Sequence record: MN047793.1
Strand: one strand, 5' to 3'
Length of the DNA: 64,000 nucleotides
A program made the position numbers and the translations under genes. Under the pieces are notes generated by a model that ran no database searches, was not told where the DNA came from, and saw only the letters and a program-made list of their open reading frames with translations. How positions within the stretch are numbered: the first letter of the stretch is position 1; each line of letters opens with the position of its first letter. Shown one piece after another: positions 33,820 through 52,062 of this stretch.

Positions 33820-33915
33820 GGGGAGTTAGCTCAGTTGGTAGAGCATCGGGCAATAAACCGGCCGGTTTGCTAGAAGTCCCGAGGGTCGATGGTTCGAGAC
33901 CATCACTCCCCACCA
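33820..33915 (+). ncRNA. tRNA-like RNA with a 27-nt anticodon loop
   Basis: GGGGAGT/ACTCCCC-A-CCA, canonical D and T arms, TCGGG/CCCGA stem enclosing 27 nt. Confidence 0.8.
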
Positions 33916-36790: not shown

Positions 36791-36866
36791 GGCCTTGTAG
36801 CTCAGCGGTCAGAGCAGGAGCCTCTAAAACTCTAGGTCGTGGGTTCGATCCCCACCAAGGCCACCA
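36791..36866 (+). tRNA. tRNA with CTA anticodon (amber suppressor-type), Lys-like body
   Basis: GGCCTTG/CAAGGCC-A-CCA; arm GGAGC-CTCTAAA-ACTCT; T arm like the neighbouring Lys(TTT). Confidence 0.85.
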
Positions 36867-37534: not shown

Positions 37535-37631
37535 GGGGAGTAAGCACATTGGTTATGGGCATCGACTGAGGAGGGAGTGAAACCTAACTCCGGCGAAGGT
37601 AGTGAGGTTCGATTCCTCATACTCTCCACCA
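37535..37631 (+). ncRNA. tRNA-like RNA with expanded anticodon domain
   Basis: GGGGAGT/ACTCTCC-A-CCA, T arm TGAGG-TTCGATT-CCTCA, internal GGAG/CTCC hairpin; own sigma70 promoter. Confidence 0.7.
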
Positions 37632-38348: not shown

Positions 38349-38472
38349 CGGCAGGTAAGCAAGGGGCCAAAGCTGGGCGCTTAAGGTGTAGATACTTGAA
38401 AAGGTATCAGAGATGGTAGAGTCTCCCACAAGCACCTCTAATTCGTAGGTTCGAATCCTACCCTGACGACCA
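38349..38472 (+). ncRNA. 124-nt tRNA-like RNA with a two-hairpin insert in the anticodon arm
   Basis: CGGCAGG/CCTGACG-A-CCA; Tyr-like D arm; T arm GTAGG-TTCGAAT-CCTAC. Confidence 0.7.
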
Positions 38473-39002: not shown

Positions 39003-39083
39003 TATGACTGTAGAGGGATTCGTCCCTCAGATGTTGAAATGAAGGACAGGAACACGGGAGTTCGATTCTCCCCAGGTCCACCA
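39003..39083 (+). ncRNA. ssrA: tmRNA acceptor piece (3' part of a permuted ssrA; 5' boundary approximate)
   Basis: GGGAG-TTCGATT-CTCCC T arm, CAGGTCC-A-CCA; pairs with GGGCCTG at 39231 giving G3:U70. Confidence 0.85.
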
Positions 39084-39230
39084 AAAATATATTACCCTAC
39101 CCAAGGGGTTGTCAGCAGGGTTGGAAGGACTGACACATGCAAAAACTATTCAGCCGTTGTAATGGCGTGTTGTTGGGAAGGTTCAAAATCCCGGTATAAA
39201 TGAATAGCGAATCCGTAATGTATTTTTGAT

Positions 39231-39410
39231 GGGCCTGCACTGGTTTCGACTCTTGGAGATAATGGAGATTGACAGTTGGTCACACAAGACTTTAAAATGA
39301 AGACAGAGAAGTCTCTAATCACAAAGAATTAAACGACAACGTTGATTCATTCGATTTCGCCATGGCGGCCTAATCCCAAGCACATCTAGCACTTGGTCAC
39401 CCGACGCTAG
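39231..39410 (+). ncRNA. ssrA: tmRNA coding piece (5' acceptor strand plus tag ORF; 3' boundary approximate)
   Basis: GGGCCTGcaCTGGTTTCGAC start; tag reading frame ...NDNVDSFDFAMAA* at 39332-39373. Confidence 0.88.
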
Positions 39411-39688: not shown

Positions 39689-39768
39689 GCGATAGTAGAT
39701 GTAAGCCAAGAATGGTAATGGTGGGGCTGTAGGGCTACGCATGCATGGTTCGAATCCATGCCATCGTC
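39689..39768 (+). pseudogene. Degenerate tRNA-like element
   Basis: GCGATAG/CCATCGT acceptor, CATGG-TTCGAAT-CCATG T arm, no clear anticodon arm or CCA. Confidence 0.4.
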
Positions 39769-39890
39769 AATCTATCGAAGTCAGAGCGGTCATTATGGCA
39801 CTCATATTTGATTTGAGTAAACGGCGTAAATGGTCTAACGGGACCTAGCTCTGGCGGTACTATTCTAGGAGAAGTGATATGGGTTGTGGA

Positions 39891-40247: not shown

Positions 40248-40884
40248 TTGATGGGTGGTCGGTAGCTCTACAAGGCCCTATTATTACTCCATATCTTTAG
40301 CGAAAGTGCACGCCCGGAATTAACTGGGTCTGCGGTATGCAGAGGGAGATTGATTATTATCTACACATGACCCATCAATTTTTAATTGGATAGAGTGCAG
40401 TTAGCCGGTATCATTGGAAATATCCAAGCATCGCAAAGTGACAATGCCGATGATATCCTGATGCACATAATCCATACTAATACTGATGCGATAAAGTGTA
40501 AGTGGCTACATACAAGGCTCATAACCTTGAGTGCCGGTTCGACTCCGGAATTCGCTACCAAATTGTAAACATCATGCAAAATGTGTAAAAATAGTGATCA
40601 CTGATCGGCTAGTGAAACAGATTAGGATGTTGTTTACAACCAAATACCATCAGGTCAAAAGTTAACGACTAGTATTAACGAGTATGTGTAAGAACATATA
40701 CCTATGGTACCCAAATCAAAGCATGTGATTCATGCCCCGCCACATGGGAAGCGTGGCTCTGCTCTATCATTGCAAACTGTATATGATATGCGTTTTGATG
40801 GTTTCAAGTAAACCATTGGTGCTAAGCCGGTTTTGGGAGTCATTTTCTGCACCCGATAAAGAAAACTCCACATGGTCTGGTATT
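40248..40884 (+). ncRNA. Second block of stem-closed structured RNA cassettes
   Basis: Closing helices 40248-56/40370-78, 40563-70/40632-39, 40643-49/40878-84; T-loop+ACCA end at 40533-40560; no credible ORF. Confidence 0.5.
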
Positions 40885-42588: not shown

Positions 42589-43299
42589 ATGCTTATCAAG
42601 AATATTTCCCCAACTACTCTCATCACCAGTGGTGTTGGTGTTGCAGTGTCTTGGGTTATTGGTCTTATGACCGTTTCTGTTCTCTTCGTAGTGTTCAGCT
42701 ATCTCAACGATGCTCGGAACAATTACAACGCTGTCAAGCAACTGGATATTGTGTCTGTTGGCCGAATCCATACCTTCAGTGGTATTACGTCTAAGAATGG
42801 CTCCAACATTGTCCACCATGATTGTGTAGCTGTTGAAGTAAACAACGACGTTATGATGCGCGATAAGAGCGCTCCGTCCGGGTCAAGTGCTTATTGTAAT
42901 AATCTATTCATTGAATATCTTCCTAACTGGAAGTTGCTGGCTAGTCCGGATTCGATGAAGATTATTGAACGGTCGTTCTGGTCGGTGGCTATCTGTGTGG
43001 TCGTCATTGCTGGCTTCTATCTTGCTTTGCGTATTCCTGCAATCCTCATCTGCTGTGTCGTTAAGCCGTTGATGCCTTATTACAATTTGGTTACGTTTGT
43101 CTTCCTGCTTCCTGTGTTCTATGTCCTGGCTTTGTTCCTCAGTAGTGCATGGGAGTATCATCCTAAGCTCTGGGTGACGCCTGACGGCCGTGGCGTGAGT
43201 ACTGAAGCCATCTACGTCACTAAGGACGGAAGCCTCTACAATCGCCCGGAATCGTCCTTTGAGTGGACTCAGGCAAAAGCAGGTAAGCCGATTCGATGA
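42589..43299 (+). CDS. Multi-pass membrane protein
   Basis: One N-terminal and two C-terminal TM segments. Confidence 0.75.
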   Translation: MLIKNISPTTLITSGVGVAVSWVIGLMTVSVLFVVFSYLNDARNNYNAVKQLDIVSVGRIHTFSGITSKNGSNIVHHDCVAVEVNNDVMMRDKSAPSGSSAYCNNLFIEYLPNWKLLASPDSMKIIERSFWSVAICVVVIAGFYLALRIPAILICCVVKPLMPYYNLVTFVFLLPVFYVLALFLSSAWEYHPKLWVTPDGRGVSTEAIYVTKDGSLYNRPESSFEWTQAKAGKPIR

Positions 43300-43715
43300 G
43301 TACTGAGTTCCTTTCCGTACCGAGTCGTCGTGAAGAACGGTTTTTCAAGCGAGCACGTGAAATTAGTCTCAAGTCTGACCATACCAAATGTAAGATTGGT
43401 GCTGTCATTGTTTTGGGCAATTATGTGGTGTCATCTGGCGTAAATCGGATGAAAAGCCACACAATTCAGGCAAGATATGACAAGAAAATGAACTATTATG
43501 GCCTTTTTCAGCGTTTGCACTCTGAAATTGATGCCCTGATTAGTAGTTCTAGGGTTGATTTGGGTGATGCAGAGATTTATGTGTACCGCGAATCTAGCCT
43601 TGGACAGATTGGCAACTGTAGGCCTTGTGTCAGCTGTACACAGGCCATTAGGGATGCTGGTATCCGTCATGTGTTCTATACCTTGCCCGAAGGGTTTGCA
43701 TACGAACATTGGTGA
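43296..43715 (+). CDS. Cytidine/deoxycytidylate deaminase-family protein
   Basis: IGAVIV..SGVN, HSEIDAL, PCVSC zinc motifs. Confidence 0.85.
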   Translation: MSTEFLSVPSRREERFFKRAREISLKSDHTKCKIGAVIVLGNYVVSSGVNRMKSHTIQARYDKKMNYYGLFQRLHSEIDALISSSRVDLGDAEIYVYRESSLGQIGNCRPCVSCTQAIRDAGIRHVFYTLPEGFAYEHW

Positions 43716-47334: not shown

Positions 47335-47480
47335 AACCTTTCCATGAGTGGAAAGAAGAACAAATTGCTAGTCACACTCGTGAAAATAATGGGGTTAAAA
47401 CATTTAAAGAGCGCGAGTGGTACTGGAAAGAATATGGGAAGTACTGCACTAAAATGCGAAAGCAATCTAAATAGAAAAAT

Positions 47481-47556
47481 GGTACAGTAGCTCAGTTGGT
47501 AGAGCGACGCTTTCATACGGCGTTGGTCGAGTGTTCGATTCACTCCTGTACCACCA
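47481..47556 (+). tRNA. tRNA-Met(CAT), elongator-type
   Basis: Loop TTCATAC; paired 1-72. Confidence 0.88.
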
Positions 47557-47562
47557 AAATTC

Positions 47563-47664
47563 AGTCCTGTTGCTAATGTTGGCCGTAGGGGCACCCTTAT
47601 ACAGTGCTAGAGCAATCTCCAGATAAGAGATGTAACGTGGGTTCGATTCCCACCGGGACTACCA
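47563..47664 (+). tRNA. Atypical tRNA-Ile(TAT)-like RNA with a 29-nt variable region
   Basis: AGTCCTG/CGGGACT-A-CCA; GCACC-CTTATAC-AGTGC; ATCTC/GAGAT extra hairpin. Confidence 0.65.
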
Positions 47665-47729: not shown

Positions 47730-48434
47730 ATGACACCGCACACCTTCATCGACGCTGATAATAACAAGACAATCAAGGCTAACCAGCCTGAACCATATAT
47801 CAATGTGAAGTGGCCGGCTATGTTGGTGACTGGTGATAAAGTTACGCCGGAACAGGCTCGGGATATCATTTTTAGAACCAATGGCTCGTATATCAGCACC
47901 AATGACCGTGATTTTGAAGCTAAAGTCATGGAATATCTTGGTATCCCTAAAGGTGAATATGGATATTACAACGGATATGATAAACTCAGGGAAAAATTCC
48001 AATCCCTTTCTCTACATTATCTTAATAATGACCGTATTTCATCTTGCTGGGTTGGTGGGTTTCATGGTTGGATGAATTGGGATGGTACGGTATTCAGTAA
48101 TAATTACAACATTGGTAAATGGCCGAGTGTTGAGGAAGTGTTAGAAGACTGGGCCGCGATTGCTCAGGCATTCCCTTACCTCAATCTGCGATGCCAGTTG
48201 CTTAACCATGAATCTTCTGAAGATATTGAAGAACCTAAAGTAACGGTTGAGTATGTTGTTAAGGATGGCACCGTTGCTATGTTTCTTCCTGAAGATGTTT
48301 CAAAGCTTGTGGTTTCTATTAAGCCGTTGAGCGATGATGACATCCTGCCAATGTTTGACCTCAATTACAAAGATAATATTGGTTTCACTCGCTTCAAAAG
48401 TGAATTTGAAAAATTCAAGAAACAAAATCCTTGA
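47730..48434 (+). CDS. Hypothetical protein
   Basis: 234-aa ORF. Confidence 0.75.
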   Translation: MTPHTFIDADNNKTIKANQPEPYINVKWPAMLVTGDKVTPEQARDIIFRTNGSYISTNDRDFEAKVMEYLGIPKGEYGYYNGYDKLREKFQSLSLHYLNNDRISSCWVGGFHGWMNWDGTVFSNNYNIGKWPSVEEVLEDWAAIAQAFPYLNLRCQLLNHESSEDIEEPKVTVEYVVKDGTVAMFLPEDVSKLVVSIKPLSDDDILPMFDLNYKDNIGFTRFKSEFEKFKKQNP

Positions 48435-48471
48435 CACGTACAAATAGTAGAGTTAAAGTAACAACTTAAAT

Positions 48472-48560
48472 GGCTAGGTGGCGGAGAAGTCGAACGCAGG
48501 GGACTGCAAATCCTCATGGAGAAATCCTCATCACAGGTGCAAATCCTGTTCTGGCCTCCA
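48472..48560 (+). tRNA. tRNA-Cys(GCA) with long variable arm
   Basis: Loop CTGCAAA, U73, 17-nt variable region. Confidence 0.85.
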
Positions 48561-48764
48561 AATTTCAGAGAAATAGATGAAAACCTTCATTCAATCATTA
48601 TTTTGCTTGCCACTCACTGCATTTGTTGGTATCATCTTTCACCAAGAGCCAGCAGTTATCTGGCAAGCTGCATTAACATTCTGGCCGGTCTGGTGGTTGT
48701 TATTGCATCTGGATAATCGAACGGTTACACCTGTTGTACAAGAAAGCTAAATAGATTCATAATT

Positions 48765-48851
48765 GGGTCAGTCGCTCAGCGGCCGAGAGCACGAGACTGT
48801 TAATCTCGCGACGAAAGTCCATCGCTGGTTCGAATCCAGCCTGTCCCTCCA
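48765..48851 (+). tRNA. tRNA-Asn(GTT) with long variable arm
   Basis: Loop CTGTTAA; GAC-GAAA-GTC extra arm; U73. Confidence 0.82.
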
Positions 48852-49078
48852 AATTCGCAACATCGTTACACAAACACTATATAAGACTATGACACTCTCT
48901 GAATTCCAAAATATTAAGGCAGACTTTACCGCCATTCTTGCAGACGCTTTTGAGCGGAAACTGCGAGATATGGGCGACGATGCCAAAGGTATTACTTGGT
49001 TTTCGTCAGTAGCAAAGAGTCATAGTAAGAACAAGCAAGAGTAAAGCATCGAAAACATTCCGGTGCTTTAAGTAACAC

Positions 49079-49154
49079 GGGAATGTAGCTCAGTTGGTAG
49101 AGCAGTCGCTTGAAAAGCTTCGTGTCATAGGTTCAATTCCTATCATTCCCACCA
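49079..49154 (+). tRNA. tRNA-Phe(GAA), weak anticodon stem
   Basis: GTCGC-TTGAAAA-GCTTC (two mismatches). Confidence 0.75.
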
Positions 49155-49174
49155 ATTTTGTTGTATGATATAAC

Positions 49175-49249
49175 GGAGCCGTAGTTTAACGGTCAGAATA
49201 GAGGCTTGTCACGCCTTTGGAAGGGGTTCGATTCCCCTCGGTTCCGCCA
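49175..49249 (+). tRNA. tRNA-Asp(GTC)
   Basis: Loop TTGTCAC, G73. Confidence 0.93.
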
Positions 49250-49263
49250 CATTTAGGATAATT

Positions 49264-49506
49264 ATGTTATTCAGGTCTAAAAACACAGGCAAGGTTGTAG
49301 GAGAGATTCAAGACCCGCAGCTGTTGCGGATTGGACCATGTACTGCAATTGATGTTACATGCATCACTGCCGTGTACAAAAAGAATGGTAATCTGATTAT
49401 CCGTTTCGGTGGAATTGGAACTATTGAAGTTCCACCGGCAGAGTTGTACAGCACAATTCAGCTTACTGTGGAAAAGTTGCTGAAGTATGTGAAAGTTATT
49501 GTATGA
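49264..49506 (+). CDS. Hypothetical protein
   Basis: AGGA RBS. Confidence 0.55.
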   Translation: MLFRSKNTGKVVGEIQDPQLLRIGPCTAIDVTCITAVYKKNGNLIIRFGGIGTIEVPPAELYSTIQLTVEKLLKYVKVIV

Positions 49507-49691
49507 TTATTCAATGTGATAGCAAATTGACACGTACACTTGATTCTCTTGGTAAGAATCGGTTTACTCGGGCTGAAATCATTCGCCAATCAATTGCTTT
49601 ACTGAAAATGGTCGTAGAAGCCAATAATCTGGGTAACAAGGTAGTTCTAATTGCCAAGGATGGCAGGGAAAGAGAGATTATTGTAAATTAA
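49503..49691 (+). CDS. Ribbon-helix-helix (CopG-like) DNA-binding protein
   Basis: LDSL..TRAEIIRQSIALL..G.KVVL..G..REI. Confidence 0.6.
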   Translation: MIIQCDSKLTRTLDSLGKNRFTRAEIIRQSIALLKMVVEANNLGNKVVLIAKDGREREIIVN

Positions 49692-49694
49692 TAT

Positions 49695-49770
49695 TGGACT
49701 GTAGCTCAGGGGTTAGAGCGTCCGGCTGATAACCGGGAGGTCGATGGTTCGAAACCATCTAGTCCAACCA
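49695..49770 (+). tRNA. tRNA-Ile(GAT)
   Basis: Loop CTGATAA. Confidence 0.95.
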
Positions 49771-49926
49771 AATTCGCTTGACAAATCGTAAAATTAGTCT
49801 ATAATTGGCTAATCACTTAAAAAGTTCTCGGACTTATAACCGAGTGGTGGAGGCGACTGCTAGGAAACTAGTGTACCGCCCTGGTCCGGTAGGGGACTTG
49901 AAAGTTCCTACCAAAATTTGAGGTTT

Positions 49927-50003
49927 ACGGGTGTAACCGCCAACGCTACGAACGTTGAGTCAGGTAATGGATGAAAATGCAGGTTCGACCCCTGCCACCC
50001 GTG
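49927..50003 (+). ncRNA. D-armless/rearranged tRNA-Arg(ACG)-like RNA
   Basis: ACGGGTG/CACCCGT; CAACG-CTACGAA-CGTTG directly after a 7-nt linker; GCAGG-TTCGACC-CCTGC. Confidence 0.65.
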
Positions 50004-50153
50004 CATTAGAGCACTATGGTAATGACTAGACCGGCCACCAGAATTGCGCAAGAAGAGTCGAACTAGTGACAGCGGGAGAGTGCCGCACAATATTAACAGG
50101 AGAACATCATGTCTAACCTTATGCTGTAACGTAACACCCAACTAAAGGAAAAC

Positions 50154-50576
50154 ATGATGGAAACAGTAACCCCGCTACAAAATGAATGGCTACGTAAGCT
50201 CGTACCAGATGAATTCTCCGATGTAGACTACCTCTTCGAAACAGTACTCTTCGAAGGACTAATCTTCTTCTGGGAAAAGGATAGAGGCCTAGAGACCTTA
50301 GAGTTCAACGCCGACCCCCAATCCTGGGAAGATTCGAACTGCGATGGCTGGTCACAGGAAAGAGTAGATTGTTTCGAAGCAATGAAAGCTGCGTATGAAT
50401 GGGCTAAAGCGCGAGACTCAACCGAGCCGCAACCCCCACCATACGAATTGGTACGCGATAAAGAGCAATACATGAAGTTGGCAGATGTATACCAACAAGA
50501 CCTCCAGAAATGGGATGCAGAGAAAGATTTACACGTACTAAATATCGTAAAATACCGTAAGTACCTGTGGTCATAA
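50154..50576 (+). CDS. Hypothetical protein
   Basis: AAGGA RBS, 140 aa. Confidence 0.7.
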   Translation: MMETVTPLQNEWLRKLVPDEFSDVDYLFETVLFEGLIFFWEKDRGLETLEFNADPQSWEDSNCDGWSQERVDCFEAMKAAYEWAKARDSTEPQPPPYELVRDKEQYMKLADVYQQDLQKWDAEKDLHVLNIVKYRKYLWS

Positions 50577-50650
50577 TCTAAAGGATATAACATGAACGTA
50601 TATGAGGGCTATTTCAAGGGTTAAGTTACTTCAAAAAGGAGACTTAACAA

Positions 50651-51334
50651 ATGAAATACAAAACAGTAGAAACCGTTCCGTTTAAGACCACCTACATGCT
50701 TGTGAGTCGTTATCACAAGAAACAATATGGTCCGTTCGATAGCATCACTGAAGTAAAGGTTTTCCACCGAACATTAAATTGGTGGTACAATCCCTTCATT
50801 GATAAAGTCGAACTTACGGAAAAGGAACAACGTCATTTTAATTTTCTGAAAAGCATCCTCCGTGTAGAGGAAGTTTATCGCCTTGAACACCAGTATTGCA
50901 TTACCGATTTATACGGAAATGTAATACCGATTGCCGAGGTAAATGCTGCCGCTGGTGGTCGAACTTACCGAAATCATAACTGGGAAGTTCGAGAACTCAA
51001 ATGGGACCAAACCGTCCAACGCTTGGTGAAAGTCAAGGGTGATGGTAAGAAGATTAAAAAGGATTGGGCGTACACAAATAACGGTGGTTATGGGTTTGGC
51101 CGTTATTGTGAATATGCAAACCGTGCAGTAGGTTCCATCCGTTACGTCCGTACACAGGCAGAGCGTCGTGCAAGCGCTGCTCATGATGCTGATTACGGGC
51201 AGGGTCTGGTTCGTGCTGCACGTCGAGGACGCCACCTTCCACATTCTTGGGATGACCCACGTTGTGGAATGTACGACCTGCAAATCTGCTGGAAGCACAG
51301 CACGAAGCGTCGTAAGCAGTGGATTCCTAAATAA
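50651..51334 (+). CDS. Conserved phage hypothetical protein
   Basis: C-terminal R.TQAERR..R..R.LP.SWDD..CWK..TKRRKQW. Confidence 0.75.
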   Translation: MKYKTVETVPFKTTYMLVSRYHKKQYGPFDSITEVKVFHRTLNWWYNPFIDKVELTEKEQRHFNFLKSILRVEEVYRLEHQYCITDLYGNVIPIAEVNAAAGGRTYRNHNWEVRELKWDQTVQRLVKVKGDGKKIKKDWAYTNNGGYGFGRYCEYANRAVGSIRYVRTQAERRASAAHDADYGQGLVRAARRGRHLPHSWDDPRCGMYDLQICWKHSTKRRKQWIPK

Positions 51335-51340
51335 GAATGA

Positions 51341-51416
51341 GGGGCCTTAGCTCAGCTGGGAGAGCGTCGCACTTGCACTGCGAAGGTCATCGGTTCGAAC
51401 CCGATAGGCTCCACCA
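51341..51416 (+). tRNA. tRNA-Ala(TGC)
   Basis: G3:U70, loop CTTGCAC. Confidence 0.95.
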
Positions 51417-51466
51417 AAAAGTGCTTGACAGATTTAAAGTAATCTGTCATTCTATATCTACAGTTT

Positions 51467-51541
51467 GGCCGGTTAGCTCAGTGGTAGAGCGTCTCCTTTA
51501 CACGGAGAGGGTCGGGGGTTCGAAACCCTCACCGGCTACCA
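51467..51541 (+). tRNA. tRNA-Val(TAC)
   Basis: Loop TTTACAC. Confidence 0.95.
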
Positions 51542-51550
51542 ATTTTCTAT

Positions 51551-51601
51551 GTCGATGTTGGGAAACGCCAGGGGCGCGTACCCCTGCCCACATCGGCTCC
51601 A
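51551..51601 (+). ncRNA. CCA-ended minihelix-like RNA
   Basis: GTCGATGT/ACATCGGC-T-CCA with inner CAGGGG/CCCCTG hairpin, between two tRNAs. Confidence 0.5.
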
Positions 51602-51606
51602 ATTAT

Positions 51607-51696
51607 GGAAGTGTGGCCGAGTGGCTTAAGGCGGCTCCTTGCTAAGGAGTTGACCCCGTAAGGGGTCCGGGAGTTCGAATCTCTCCACTTCCGCCA
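51607..51696 (+). tRNA. tRNA-Ser(GCT)
   Basis: Type II, loop TTGCTAA. Confidence 0.95.
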
Positions 51697-51720
51697 ATTT
51701 GATCCCTTTATCTATTTGGA

Positions 51721-52062
51721 ATGTATAACATGTATCGATTCTTTCTCGCGGTTGTCATTCTTGCTATTGGCATTCCTGTTGGGTTGTACAACGCATGGCT
51801 ATTCATCGATTTGTGGAAGTGGTTTGTTGTCCCCCTCAGTCCTGAAAATATTCCGGTACTGACGGTATGGTGGGCATACGGTCTTTTGTATGTGATTGGA
51901 TGGTCACATATGACGACACTGGTGTCTTTGCCGGGTAATGTATCTGACGAAGATATTGGTGAATGTTTTGCTAATAAGATTGCGACAATTCTAGCTATTG
52001 CTGTGGTATACACTCTTATGTGGGTGGTTGCCAAATTCATCGTTTACCCTGCTGCTTTCTAA
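51721..52062 (+). CDS. Membrane protein (three hydrophobic segments)
   Basis: Hydrophobic ORF. Confidence 0.65.
   Translation: MYNMYRFFLAVVILAIGIPVGLYNAWLFIDLWKWFVVPLSPENIPVLTVWWAYGLLYVIGWSHMTTLVSLPGNVSDEDIGECFANKIATILAIAVVYTLMWVVAKFIVYPAAF

Follow-up and report, generated by a model that had tools for sequence, protein, structure and literature searches.

Positions 1-64000 of the genome of Xanthomonas phage Xoo-sp13 (MN047793.1), an X. oryzae jumbo phage with a 309-kb genome, make up the stretch of DNA analyzed here (hereafter, the window; its coordinates are identical to those of the record) and include an array of transfer RNA (tRNA) genes at 32.6-52.9 kb, in which ARAGORN identifies 26 tRNAs. 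Inside this array, at 49927-50003 on the plus strand, lies an additional element of 77 nucleotides (nt) that, we believe, is likely to function as a tRNA-Arg(ACG) of non-canonical form, with its D domain permuted, one member of a widespread, arginine-specific family that is carried by phages and tRNA arrays. The GenBank annotation of MN047793.1 contains no features between 49692 and 50156. The parts of the element are as follows.

49927-50003, plus strand: the whole gene of the non-canonical tRNA-Arg(ACG), 77 nt up to the discriminator base (82.6 bits with the family model R1 and 29.9 bits with the Rfam tRNA model; no GenBank annotation)
49927-49933, plus strand: 5' strand of the acceptor stem, forming 7 pairs with 49996-50002
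49934-49940, plus strand: linker TAACCGC, that is, U8-A9 and then the 5' strand of the putative long-range 'D stem' (A10 C11 C12 G13 C14); T8, A9, C11, and C12 are invariant in the family alignment A1
49941-49957, plus strand: anticodon arm with a perfect 5-bp stem and the 7-nt loop CTACGAA; the anticodon ACG is at 49948-49950
49958-49978, plus strand: the 21 nt between the anticodon arm and the T arm, containing GGTAATGGA
49958-49964, plus strand: 3' strand of the putative long-range 'D stem', with a bulged A at 49958, G-T at 49959-49960, C-A, and G-G at 49963-49964, as delineated from the fold and the family pairing
49965-49971, plus strand: D-loop-like motif TAATGGA
49972-49978, plus strand: linker before the T arm, with A-T at its end; the last T is the proposed equivalent of Y48
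49979-49995, plus strand: T arm with a 5-bp stem and the loop TTCGACC
49996-50002, plus strand: 3' strand of the acceptor stem, followed by the discriminator G at 50003 and then by CAT instead of CCA

The order of parts that was described in the initial annotation of this DNA, namely, acceptor strand, 7-nt linker, anticodon arm with ACG, 21 nt, T arm, and acceptor strand, can be read directly at 49927-50003. Compared with a canonical tRNA, the element possesses the acceptor stem with the discriminator, the T arm, and the anticodon arm with U33 and a purine at position 37, but has no D hairpin at positions 10-25. A canonical D arm in another register, which we also considered, is impossible because merely 5 nt separate A9 from the anticodon stem. 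The initial annotation instead proposed a local, D-like TCA...TGA hairpin; this hairpin had to be abandoned as the D element in favor of a long-range helix (see below), given that all three of its pairs are present in just 6 of the 87 homologs with the ACG anticodon. The general tRNA model of Rfam (RF00005) recognizes the element when 421 nt are searched (E-value 2.3e-4; gathering threshold, 29 bits), with an alignment that puts 15 D-arm positions onto 4 nt and inserts 18 nt in the variable region. No RF00005 match to 49927-50003 was reported in the whole-window search with the gathering threshold or in the whole-record search with E-values up to 0.01, and ARAGORN run on the window makes no call for this segment. 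The search of 49760-50180 against other Rfam families yielded only a chance match to Plastid-ycf2 on the minus strand (E-value 0.77). The minimum-energy structure produced by RNAfold, which accounts for 35% of the ensemble, consists of the three stems and the long-range pairs, the same as in the family model.

Homologs of this element were sought in IMG/VR with two pattern scans, one anchored in the anticodon loop and the other one blind to the anticodon, and in the genomes of bacterial species with a 19-base pattern; the parsers demanded at least 6 of the 7 acceptor pairs and at least 4 of the 5 T-stem pairs. The structural parsing resulted in at least 124 distinct sequences of the same layout, a total that rests on the matches listed, from IMG/VR contigs, phage GenBank records (10 cultured phages), 12 bacterial genomes, and one megaplasmid; one dubious parse, with the anticodon AAA, was dropped. 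A sensitive blastn search detects the same 77-nt element in the tRNA arrays of phage XacN1, Stenotrophomonas phages CM1, RAS14, and DLP_6, Mesorhizobium phage Cp1R7A-A1, and Rhizobium phage RHph_I1_18, and the use of family members as queries added Xanthomonas phages BUDD and X1 as well as Microbacterium phages Zooman and Pumpernickel. The family includes more than 120 homologs in phages of Gammaproteobacteria, Alphaproteobacteria, and Actinobacteria. The initial annotation made its case dependent on the arm order being kept in relatives, and the layout is indeed retained throughout these homologs, which strongly supports the core of that annotation. From an alignment of 58 sequences (A1), we built a family model (R1), which detects the Xoo-sp13 element with an E-value of 1.6e-21 and a score equal to that of the XacN1 copy; it also retrieved relatives with other anticodons and linkers in the flanks of the fetched loci, and detected no further copy in either the window or the complete record of Xoo-sp13.

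This family has been missed by annotation. The element is not annotated in any of the 10 cultured-phage records examined, and ARAGORN calls overlap 3 of 123 family members, all three being miscalled. The report on XacN1, which counts 26 canonical tRNAs, 2 suppressors, and 1 pseudogene in each repeat, gives no description of the non-canonical tRNA (PMC5852040). We found no paper describing a tRNA of this layout in the full-text literature, including searches with motif strings, with the proviso that the coverage of this search is incomplete and an earlier description might exist elsewhere.

The three stems are supported by compensatory changes across the family. In A1 (n = 58), every acceptor, anticodon, and T-stem pair is formed in all sequences (100%), double changes occur at 17 pairs, and 95.6% of all pair cells are paired, compared to 68.7% in shuffled alignments and 32-41% with slid partners. 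A broader, model-fitted alignment is paired at 97.9%; for the two alignments together, the paired fraction is 95.6-97.9%, compared with 61-69% after shuffling and 32-44% with slid partners, and 17-19 pairs are doubly changed. In A1, compensatory changes affect every one of the 7 acceptor pairs and the anticodon stem as well. In the T stem, 3-4 pairs show such changes across the two alignments. The T loop has the sequence TTCGAnn in nearly all family members.

In place of the D hairpin, the family has a long-range helix that encloses the anticodon arm: the 2-3 nt that follow U8-A9-N10 are complementary to the 2-3 nt located just before a TAAYTGGA motif, on the other side of the arm. The complementary segments differ among family members, for example, CC/GG, GC/GC, CG/CG, CT/AG, CTC/GAG, CAC/GTG, CGG/CCG, and CCC/GGG. 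In an anchor-based count that does not depend on the model (n = 124, among the matches listed), the first pair is CG in 123 sequences and GC in one, and the second pair is CG in 91, GC in 29, UA in 2, and AU in 1, with a single mismatch; the model-fitted alignment agrees with this count. A further pair next to the anticodon stem, across the bulged A (49940-49959), is CG in 33 sequences of the ACG group, GC in 12, and something else in 13. For the window copy, RNAfold predicts pairing of 49936-49938 with 49963-49965 and of 49939-49940 with 49959-49960, leaving A49958 bulged.

The TAA(Y)(T)GGA motif is present in every family member, including those that came from searches in which GGA was not specified (the first IMG/VR scan left the anticodon-stem pairing, the GGA motif, and the terminal AT unconstrained). 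The linker ahead of the T stem ends with A-T family-wide and, in some relatives, contains an extra GNRA-capped hairpin; U8 and the standard T loop are retained. The third base of the TAR portion of the motif co-varies with the last base of this linker (A-T in 122 sequences, G-C in 2-3, and no mixed combinations), as would be expected of a 15-48 Levitt pair, albeit with few events. The aligned sequences directly support the predicted secondary structure of the rewired D domain; for its tertiary contacts, we infer that TAAYUGGA supplies stand-ins for A14, R15, G18, G19, and A20. The family members would then be L-shaped tRNAs in which the D stem-loop is circularly permuted around the anticodon arm, apparently in the order D 3'-like strand, anticodon arm, D 5'-like strand, open D loop, linker, and T arm.

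All members of the family have arginine anticodons, namely, ACG in 87, TCT in 26, TCG in 7, CCT in 3, and GCG in 1 (124 of 124 among the matches listed), and the same holds for the matches from the anticodon-blind scan and the R1 search. Arginyl-tRNA synthetase (ArgRS) reads C35, position 36, and A20. The window anticodon ACG and all 124 family anticodons conform to NCG or NCU and hence combine C35 with G36 or U36, and the A of the GGA motif is present in every member. The maintenance of one amino-acid identity across five anticodons argues for recognition of this fold by ArgRS. Among the matches listed, CCA is encoded after the discriminator in 110 of the 124 sequences and is missing in 14; the discriminator itself is U in 63, G in 44, A in 15, and C in 2, with G73 in the window copy.

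Contrary to the claim that ACG is the one arginine anticodon lacking in the normal tRNA set, the canonical set of Xoo-sp13 includes Arg(TCT) alone, so that CCG, CCT, and TCG are missing too. The ICG anticodon reads CGU, CGC, and CGA, and in the open reading frames (ORFs) of at least 150 amino acids (aa) in the window, CGT, CGC, and CGA together make up 73% of the arginine codons. The anticodon stem-loop of tRNA-Arg(ACG) suffices for the deaminase TadA, and a stem-loop of this type, with the loop CUACGAA on a 5-bp stem, is present in the element. Searches for an ArgRS gene (PF00750) found no match in Xoo-sp13, XacN1, BUDD, or Zooman. A phage-encoded TadA was considered as well: the tRNA array includes an ORF for a 139-aa zinc deaminase (43296-43715, plus strand; HxE ... 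PCxxC), which is conserved in the XacN1 terminal repeat, but this protein is closest to dCMP deaminases, and its match to TadA (E-value 0.008) is far below the cut-off. A second, longer deaminase is encoded in Xoo-sp13 at record positions 116425-116757. Without an ArgRS in the four phages and with a deaminase that is not TadA, charging and editing of A34 would fall to host enzymes.

The loci that carry the family are nearly all located in tRNA arrays, with a median of 10 ARAGORN tRNAs per locus, and a canonical ACG tRNA is present as well in only 5 of the 87 loci with the non-canonical ACG form (within the fetched stretch, among the matches listed). The 12 matching bacterial genomes belong mostly to Alphaproteobacteria, and 10 of the 12 respective stretches (up to 8 kb) hold 6-23 ARAGORN tRNAs; in the bacterial arrays, canonical CCG, TCT, and CCT are present, and the non-canonical form fills the ACG slot. 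The copy on a Sinorhizobium megaplasmid is somewhat degenerate and adjoins a canonical Arg(TCT). In Bradyrhizobium sp. BR13661 (locus L152, 6606-7943), the array with the non-canonical Arg(ACG) has an RtcB tRNA ligase gene on one side and genes of ordinary metabolism, PdxA and Fe-ADH, on the other, and appears island-like rather than an obvious prophage. Canonical and rewired forms can share one phage: Zooman has a row of canonical tRNA-Arg(ACG), non-canonical Arg(ACG), canonical Arg(CCG), and Arg(CCT) (locus L135, 550-847), along with a non-canonical Arg(TCT) at record positions 95033-95111. The BUDD locus (L134, about 840-960) contains, between a two-hairpin module (see below) and tRNA-Ala, an unannotated tRNA-like sequence whose anticodon loop has TGC and whose D region is degenerate.

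The element is flanked by the following features.

49778-49805, plus strand: predicted sigma-70-type promoter-like site, TTGACA-16-TATAAT, which matches the consensus at 12 of 12 positions and begins 8 nt after tRNA-Ile
49820-49880, plus strand: two-hairpin module that consists of a hairpin at 49827-49844 (8-nt loop), TGGTGGAGG, and a GAAA-capped hairpin in which GGCG (49852-49855) pairs with CGCC (49877-49880)
50010-50080, plus strand: conserved block with the 8-nt palindrome TTGCGCAA, 78% identical to positions 47450-47520 of the XacN1 record
50109-50129, plus strand: six-codon mini-ORF behind AGGAG, read from the sequence

The promoter predicted in the initial annotation is the only perfect consensus match within 48400-52000 (3.6 kb). 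If this promoter fires, the two-hairpin module would be part of the 5' leader. Over about 35 nt, the module is shared with XacN1, BUDD, and X1 at 89-94% identity, with compensatory changes in the second hairpin, and about a dozen IMG/VR contigs contain it as well. In BUDD and X1, it is located just 3' of the non-canonical tRNA; in loci L250, L256, L272, and L260, it lies directly 5' of a phage transfer-messenger RNA (tmRNA), which is permuted in L250 and L256. The module, then, is related to sequences that precede phage tmRNAs; no Rfam family matched it. Of the several hairpins that had been placed upstream of the tRNA, the first 60 nt stand as this conserved module, but the fold is not thermodynamically unusual (z-score -1.4). 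In XacN1, the counterpart of 50010-50080 directly follows the module, with no tRNA in between; hence the Xoo-sp13 tRNA sits between two blocks that are joined in the relative. We considered the possibility that the combined module and block in XacN1 are a tmRNA remnant and rejected it: there is no Rfam match, and the link is backed solely by the position of the module 5' of tmRNAs elsewhere.

A structured RNA at 50010-50080 was rejected likewise: the 150 nt downstream of the tRNA are unstructured, with a fold no better than shuffles (z-score +0.6). The palindrome in this block reads TATGCATA in XacN1 and so remains palindromic, for which reason it looks more like a candidate protein-binding site than an RNA helix. 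The mini-ORF at 50109-50129 is probably what remains of a gene that has a longer counterpart in XacN1. Searches of the neighboring proteins against Pfam and PHROGs gave no informative match. Altogether, rather than the single promoter-driven noncoding RNA block that was originally envisaged, the region appears to be a mosaic of a promoter, a module related to tmRNA leaders, a tRNA, and a non-structured block.

The public wastewater runs X2 and X3 contain a near-identical phage in which the tRNA body is unchanged, the neighboring genes carry substitutions, and 8 nt are deleted at 50004-50011, right after the discriminator. Another run (X4, of unstated kind) yields a 264-nt contig that spans exactly 49818-50081.

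The proposed path from gene to decoding is as follows. Transcription would start from the consensus promoter at 49778-49805, RNase P would cut at 49926/49927, and the 3' end would be trimmed and completed with CCA by a phage or host enzyme, the latter step being proposed because CCA is not encoded in the Xoo-sp13 copy. The 2-5 nt that follow U8-A9-N10 would pair with nucleotides past the anticodon arm, and the resulting short helix would stack on the anticodon stem, where a D stem is normally found; the open D-loop-like motif would engage U8, the T loop, and the base just ahead of the T stem, as a D loop usually does. The parts that are retained, namely, the 7-bp acceptor stem, the T arm, and the anticodon arm, would be read by EF-Tu, RNase P, the CCA-adding enzyme, and the ribosome. 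The host ArgRS would charge the tRNA via C35, G36, and the A of GGA, the host TadA would convert A34 into I34, and the mature tRNA would decode CGU, CGC, and CGA.

Several observations weigh against this scenario. The search patterns (CTACGAA, A...AGGTAA, or GTAACTGGA...AT...GGTTCGA) fix several of the 'invariant' bases by construction. The long-range helix consists of just 2-3 bp and has few independent compensatory events because the first pair is almost invariant and the G:C class occurs mostly in the TCT subgroup. The correspondence of GGA to G18-G19-A20 and the L shape are proposed from sequence alone. The discriminator is U in 51% of the family members, whereas bacterial tRNA-Arg usually has A or G in this position, a minor identity element. 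A search of public runs for this DNA returned only DNA-like contigs, and the two wastewater runs labeled 'RNA-Seq' resemble DNA in their low, uniform depth across genes and spacers. Further, the Xoo-sp13 copy, which reads GCAT from the discriminator onward, is the sole one of the 27 tRNAs in the window without an encoded CCA, and its close homologs in XacN1, CM1, and RAS14 do encode CCA, so that this copy could be on its way out; the missing CCA reduces the confidence for the Xoo-sp13 copy in particular.

The last point also speaks for the possibility that the family is functional but the Xoo-sp13 copy is decaying or silent, having moved into a former tmRNA-leader region and lost its CCA. The copy is one base off the GCCA of XacN1, lies between two blocks that are contiguous there, and has a variable 3' trailer, as the 8-nt deletion in the environmental variant demonstrates. 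Nevertheless, we regard decay as unlikely: all stems are perfect, all bases conserved in the family are kept, and the score of 82.6 bits is the same as that of the XacN1 copy; the body is unchanged in the environmental variant despite the substitutions in the neighboring genes; a perfect consensus promoter lies upstream; and 14 of the 124 family members listed likewise lack an encoded CCA. Moreover, Xoo-sp13 carries a CCA-adding-type gene (PF01743; record positions 298546-298902), and XacN1 is reported to encode a CCA nucleotidyltransferase together with the PNKP/Hen1 tRNA-repair pair (PMC5852040). Given these genes, the lack of CCA is not disabling in principle.

A different possibility is that the element is not a decoder but a tRNA-like decoy or regulator, perhaps one that is charged. 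It would retain the acceptor arm, the T arm, and an arginine-type anticodon loop in order to bind a protein such as a nuclease or defense protein, of the host or the phage, that is specific for tRNA-Arg, or else ArgRS, TadA, or a transferase that depends on Arg-tRNA. Rewiring of the D region would alter surfaces that are read by many tRNA-binding proteins, and U73 is frequent. In Zooman, the canonical Arg(ACG) is located right beside the non-canonical one, so the two forms are not always redundant. The tRNA-repair genes in these phages and arrays, PNKP/Hen1 in XacN1 (PMC5852040) and RtcB by the Bradyrhizobium array, suggest that tRNA-targeting attack belongs to the biology of these phages. However, ACG, TCT, TCG, CCT, and GCG all occur in this fold, with standard 7-nt loops, U33, and A37, none of which would be needed in a decoy of a single enzyme. 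In addition, the non-canonical form is the sole ACG tRNA of the fetched stretch in 82 of the 87 loci, in arrays that are otherwise near-complete, CCA is encoded as it is in working tRNAs, and the codons read by ICG dominate the arginine usage of the phage. We therefore find a decoy improbable. Even less credence, next to none, can be given to a chance tRNA-like fold or a broken fragment of a canonical tRNA without a function of its own. The standard tools make no call, and the Rfam tRNA score is barely at the threshold, but the more than 120 homologs have fully compensated stems and only arginine anticodons; because of this covariation, a chance fold is already refuted at the level of the family.

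The functional non-canonical tRNA-Arg(ACG), which we favor, can be compared with several types of known tRNAs. Bacterial tRNA-Arg(ACG/ICG), for example, that encoded by E. coli argQ/V/Y/Z, shares with the family a 7-bp acceptor stem, T and anticodon stems of 5 bp each, a TTCGA-type T loop, U8, and the CCA that is encoded in most family members; the GGA motif of the family would correspond to its G18-G19-A20. Some of these have the E. coli-type acceptor sequence GCATCCG, and the loop CUACGAA is also that of E. coli tRNA-Arg2. Unlike the bacterial tRNA-Arg, the family lacks the D hairpin, with 5-6 nt between A9 and the anticodon stem; its D-loop-like motif is located 3' of the anticodon arm, in a region of 21-37 nt that replaces the 5-nt variable loop; and its discriminator is often U. 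Class II tRNAs (bacterial Leu, Ser, and Tyr) likewise have a long insert between the anticodon and T arms but keep a normal D arm, whereas in the family, the insert itself bears the D-loop-like motif. The tRNA-like domain of tmRNA also combines a reduced D region with standard acceptor and T arms; however, it has no anticodon arm and has alanine identity, in contrast to the full anticodon arm and arginine anticodons of the family.

Natural tRNAs that depart from the cloverleaf include allo-tRNAs, with 8/4 or 9/3 acceptor/T branches, and tRNA-Sec, which come mostly from metagenome mining and, in part, from phages (reviewed in PMC7609411). In these tRNAs, the acceptor and T stems have altered lengths and the D arm persists, and we know of none in which the D loop follows the anticodon arm. 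Parts of the tRNA are permuted in Cyanidioschyzon merolae as well, but there it is the gene that is permuted, its 3' half lying upstream of the 5' half, and circularization leads to a mature tRNA of the normal cloverleaf form. In the phage family, the acceptor strands are in the normal order, and the strands of the D stem and the D loop would be permuted in the mature RNA itself. A parallel in shape is offered by metazoan mitochondrial tRNA-Ser(AGY) and nematode mitochondrial tRNAs, which lack the D hairpin and have, instead of the D stem, a helix that prolongs the anticodon stem (PMC7609411), as the family apparently does. These mitochondrial forms are organellar and reduced, generally lack the elbow contacts between G18-G19 and the T loop, and need adapted partner proteins. 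In contrast, the phage tRNAs are full-size, with a standard T loop, a GG motif, and a bacterial-type encoded CCA, and are specific for arginine only.

Tentatively, one can go a step further and propose that the family is an unrecognized, arginine-specific structural class, with the D domain permuted around the anticodon arm, that has been kept because the altered D and elbow surface evades host enzymes or defenses targeting tRNA-Arg while ArgRS, TadA, EF-Tu, and the ribosome accept it. The fold would then be a counter-defense or orthogonality device.

The Xoo-sp13 array includes other unusual RNAs. At 39030-39373 (plus strand), Rfam identifies a permuted, two-piece tmRNA (65.7 bits) that is not reported by ARAGORN. 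The tRNA at 36791-36866 (plus strand) has the amber anticodon CTA and is labeled 'Pyl' by ARAGORN, and the one at 33820-33915 (plus strand) is 96 nt long, with the anticodon ATA. In XacN1, CUA suppressor tRNAs are reported without identified target genes (PMC5852040). Weak RF00005 matches that are not called by ARAGORN are located at 47563-47661 (plus strand; 35.3 bits over 99 nt) and 40487-40557 (plus strand; 27.4 bits), and R1 gives 12-15 bits at 37573-37627, 38349-38469, and 39695-39769 (plus strand), also without ARAGORN calls. These weak tRNA-like matches could be additional unusual or broken tRNAs.

Outside mitochondria, the cloverleaf with a D hairpin is regarded as almost universal for elongator tRNAs. 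If the proposed reading is true, an alternative strand topology is compatible with a bacterial-type tRNA of full size, and the family provides a natural means to distinguish the tRNA-protein contacts that require the D arm proper from those for which its shape suffices. It would also offer a naturally divergent tRNA scaffold for engineering. Annotations of phages and tRNA arrays systematically overlook an Arg(ACG) gene, so that analyses of phage tRNA repertoire versus codon usage are distorted. The question this raises is why only arginine, and mainly its inosine-dependent ACG isoacceptor, adopts this fold.

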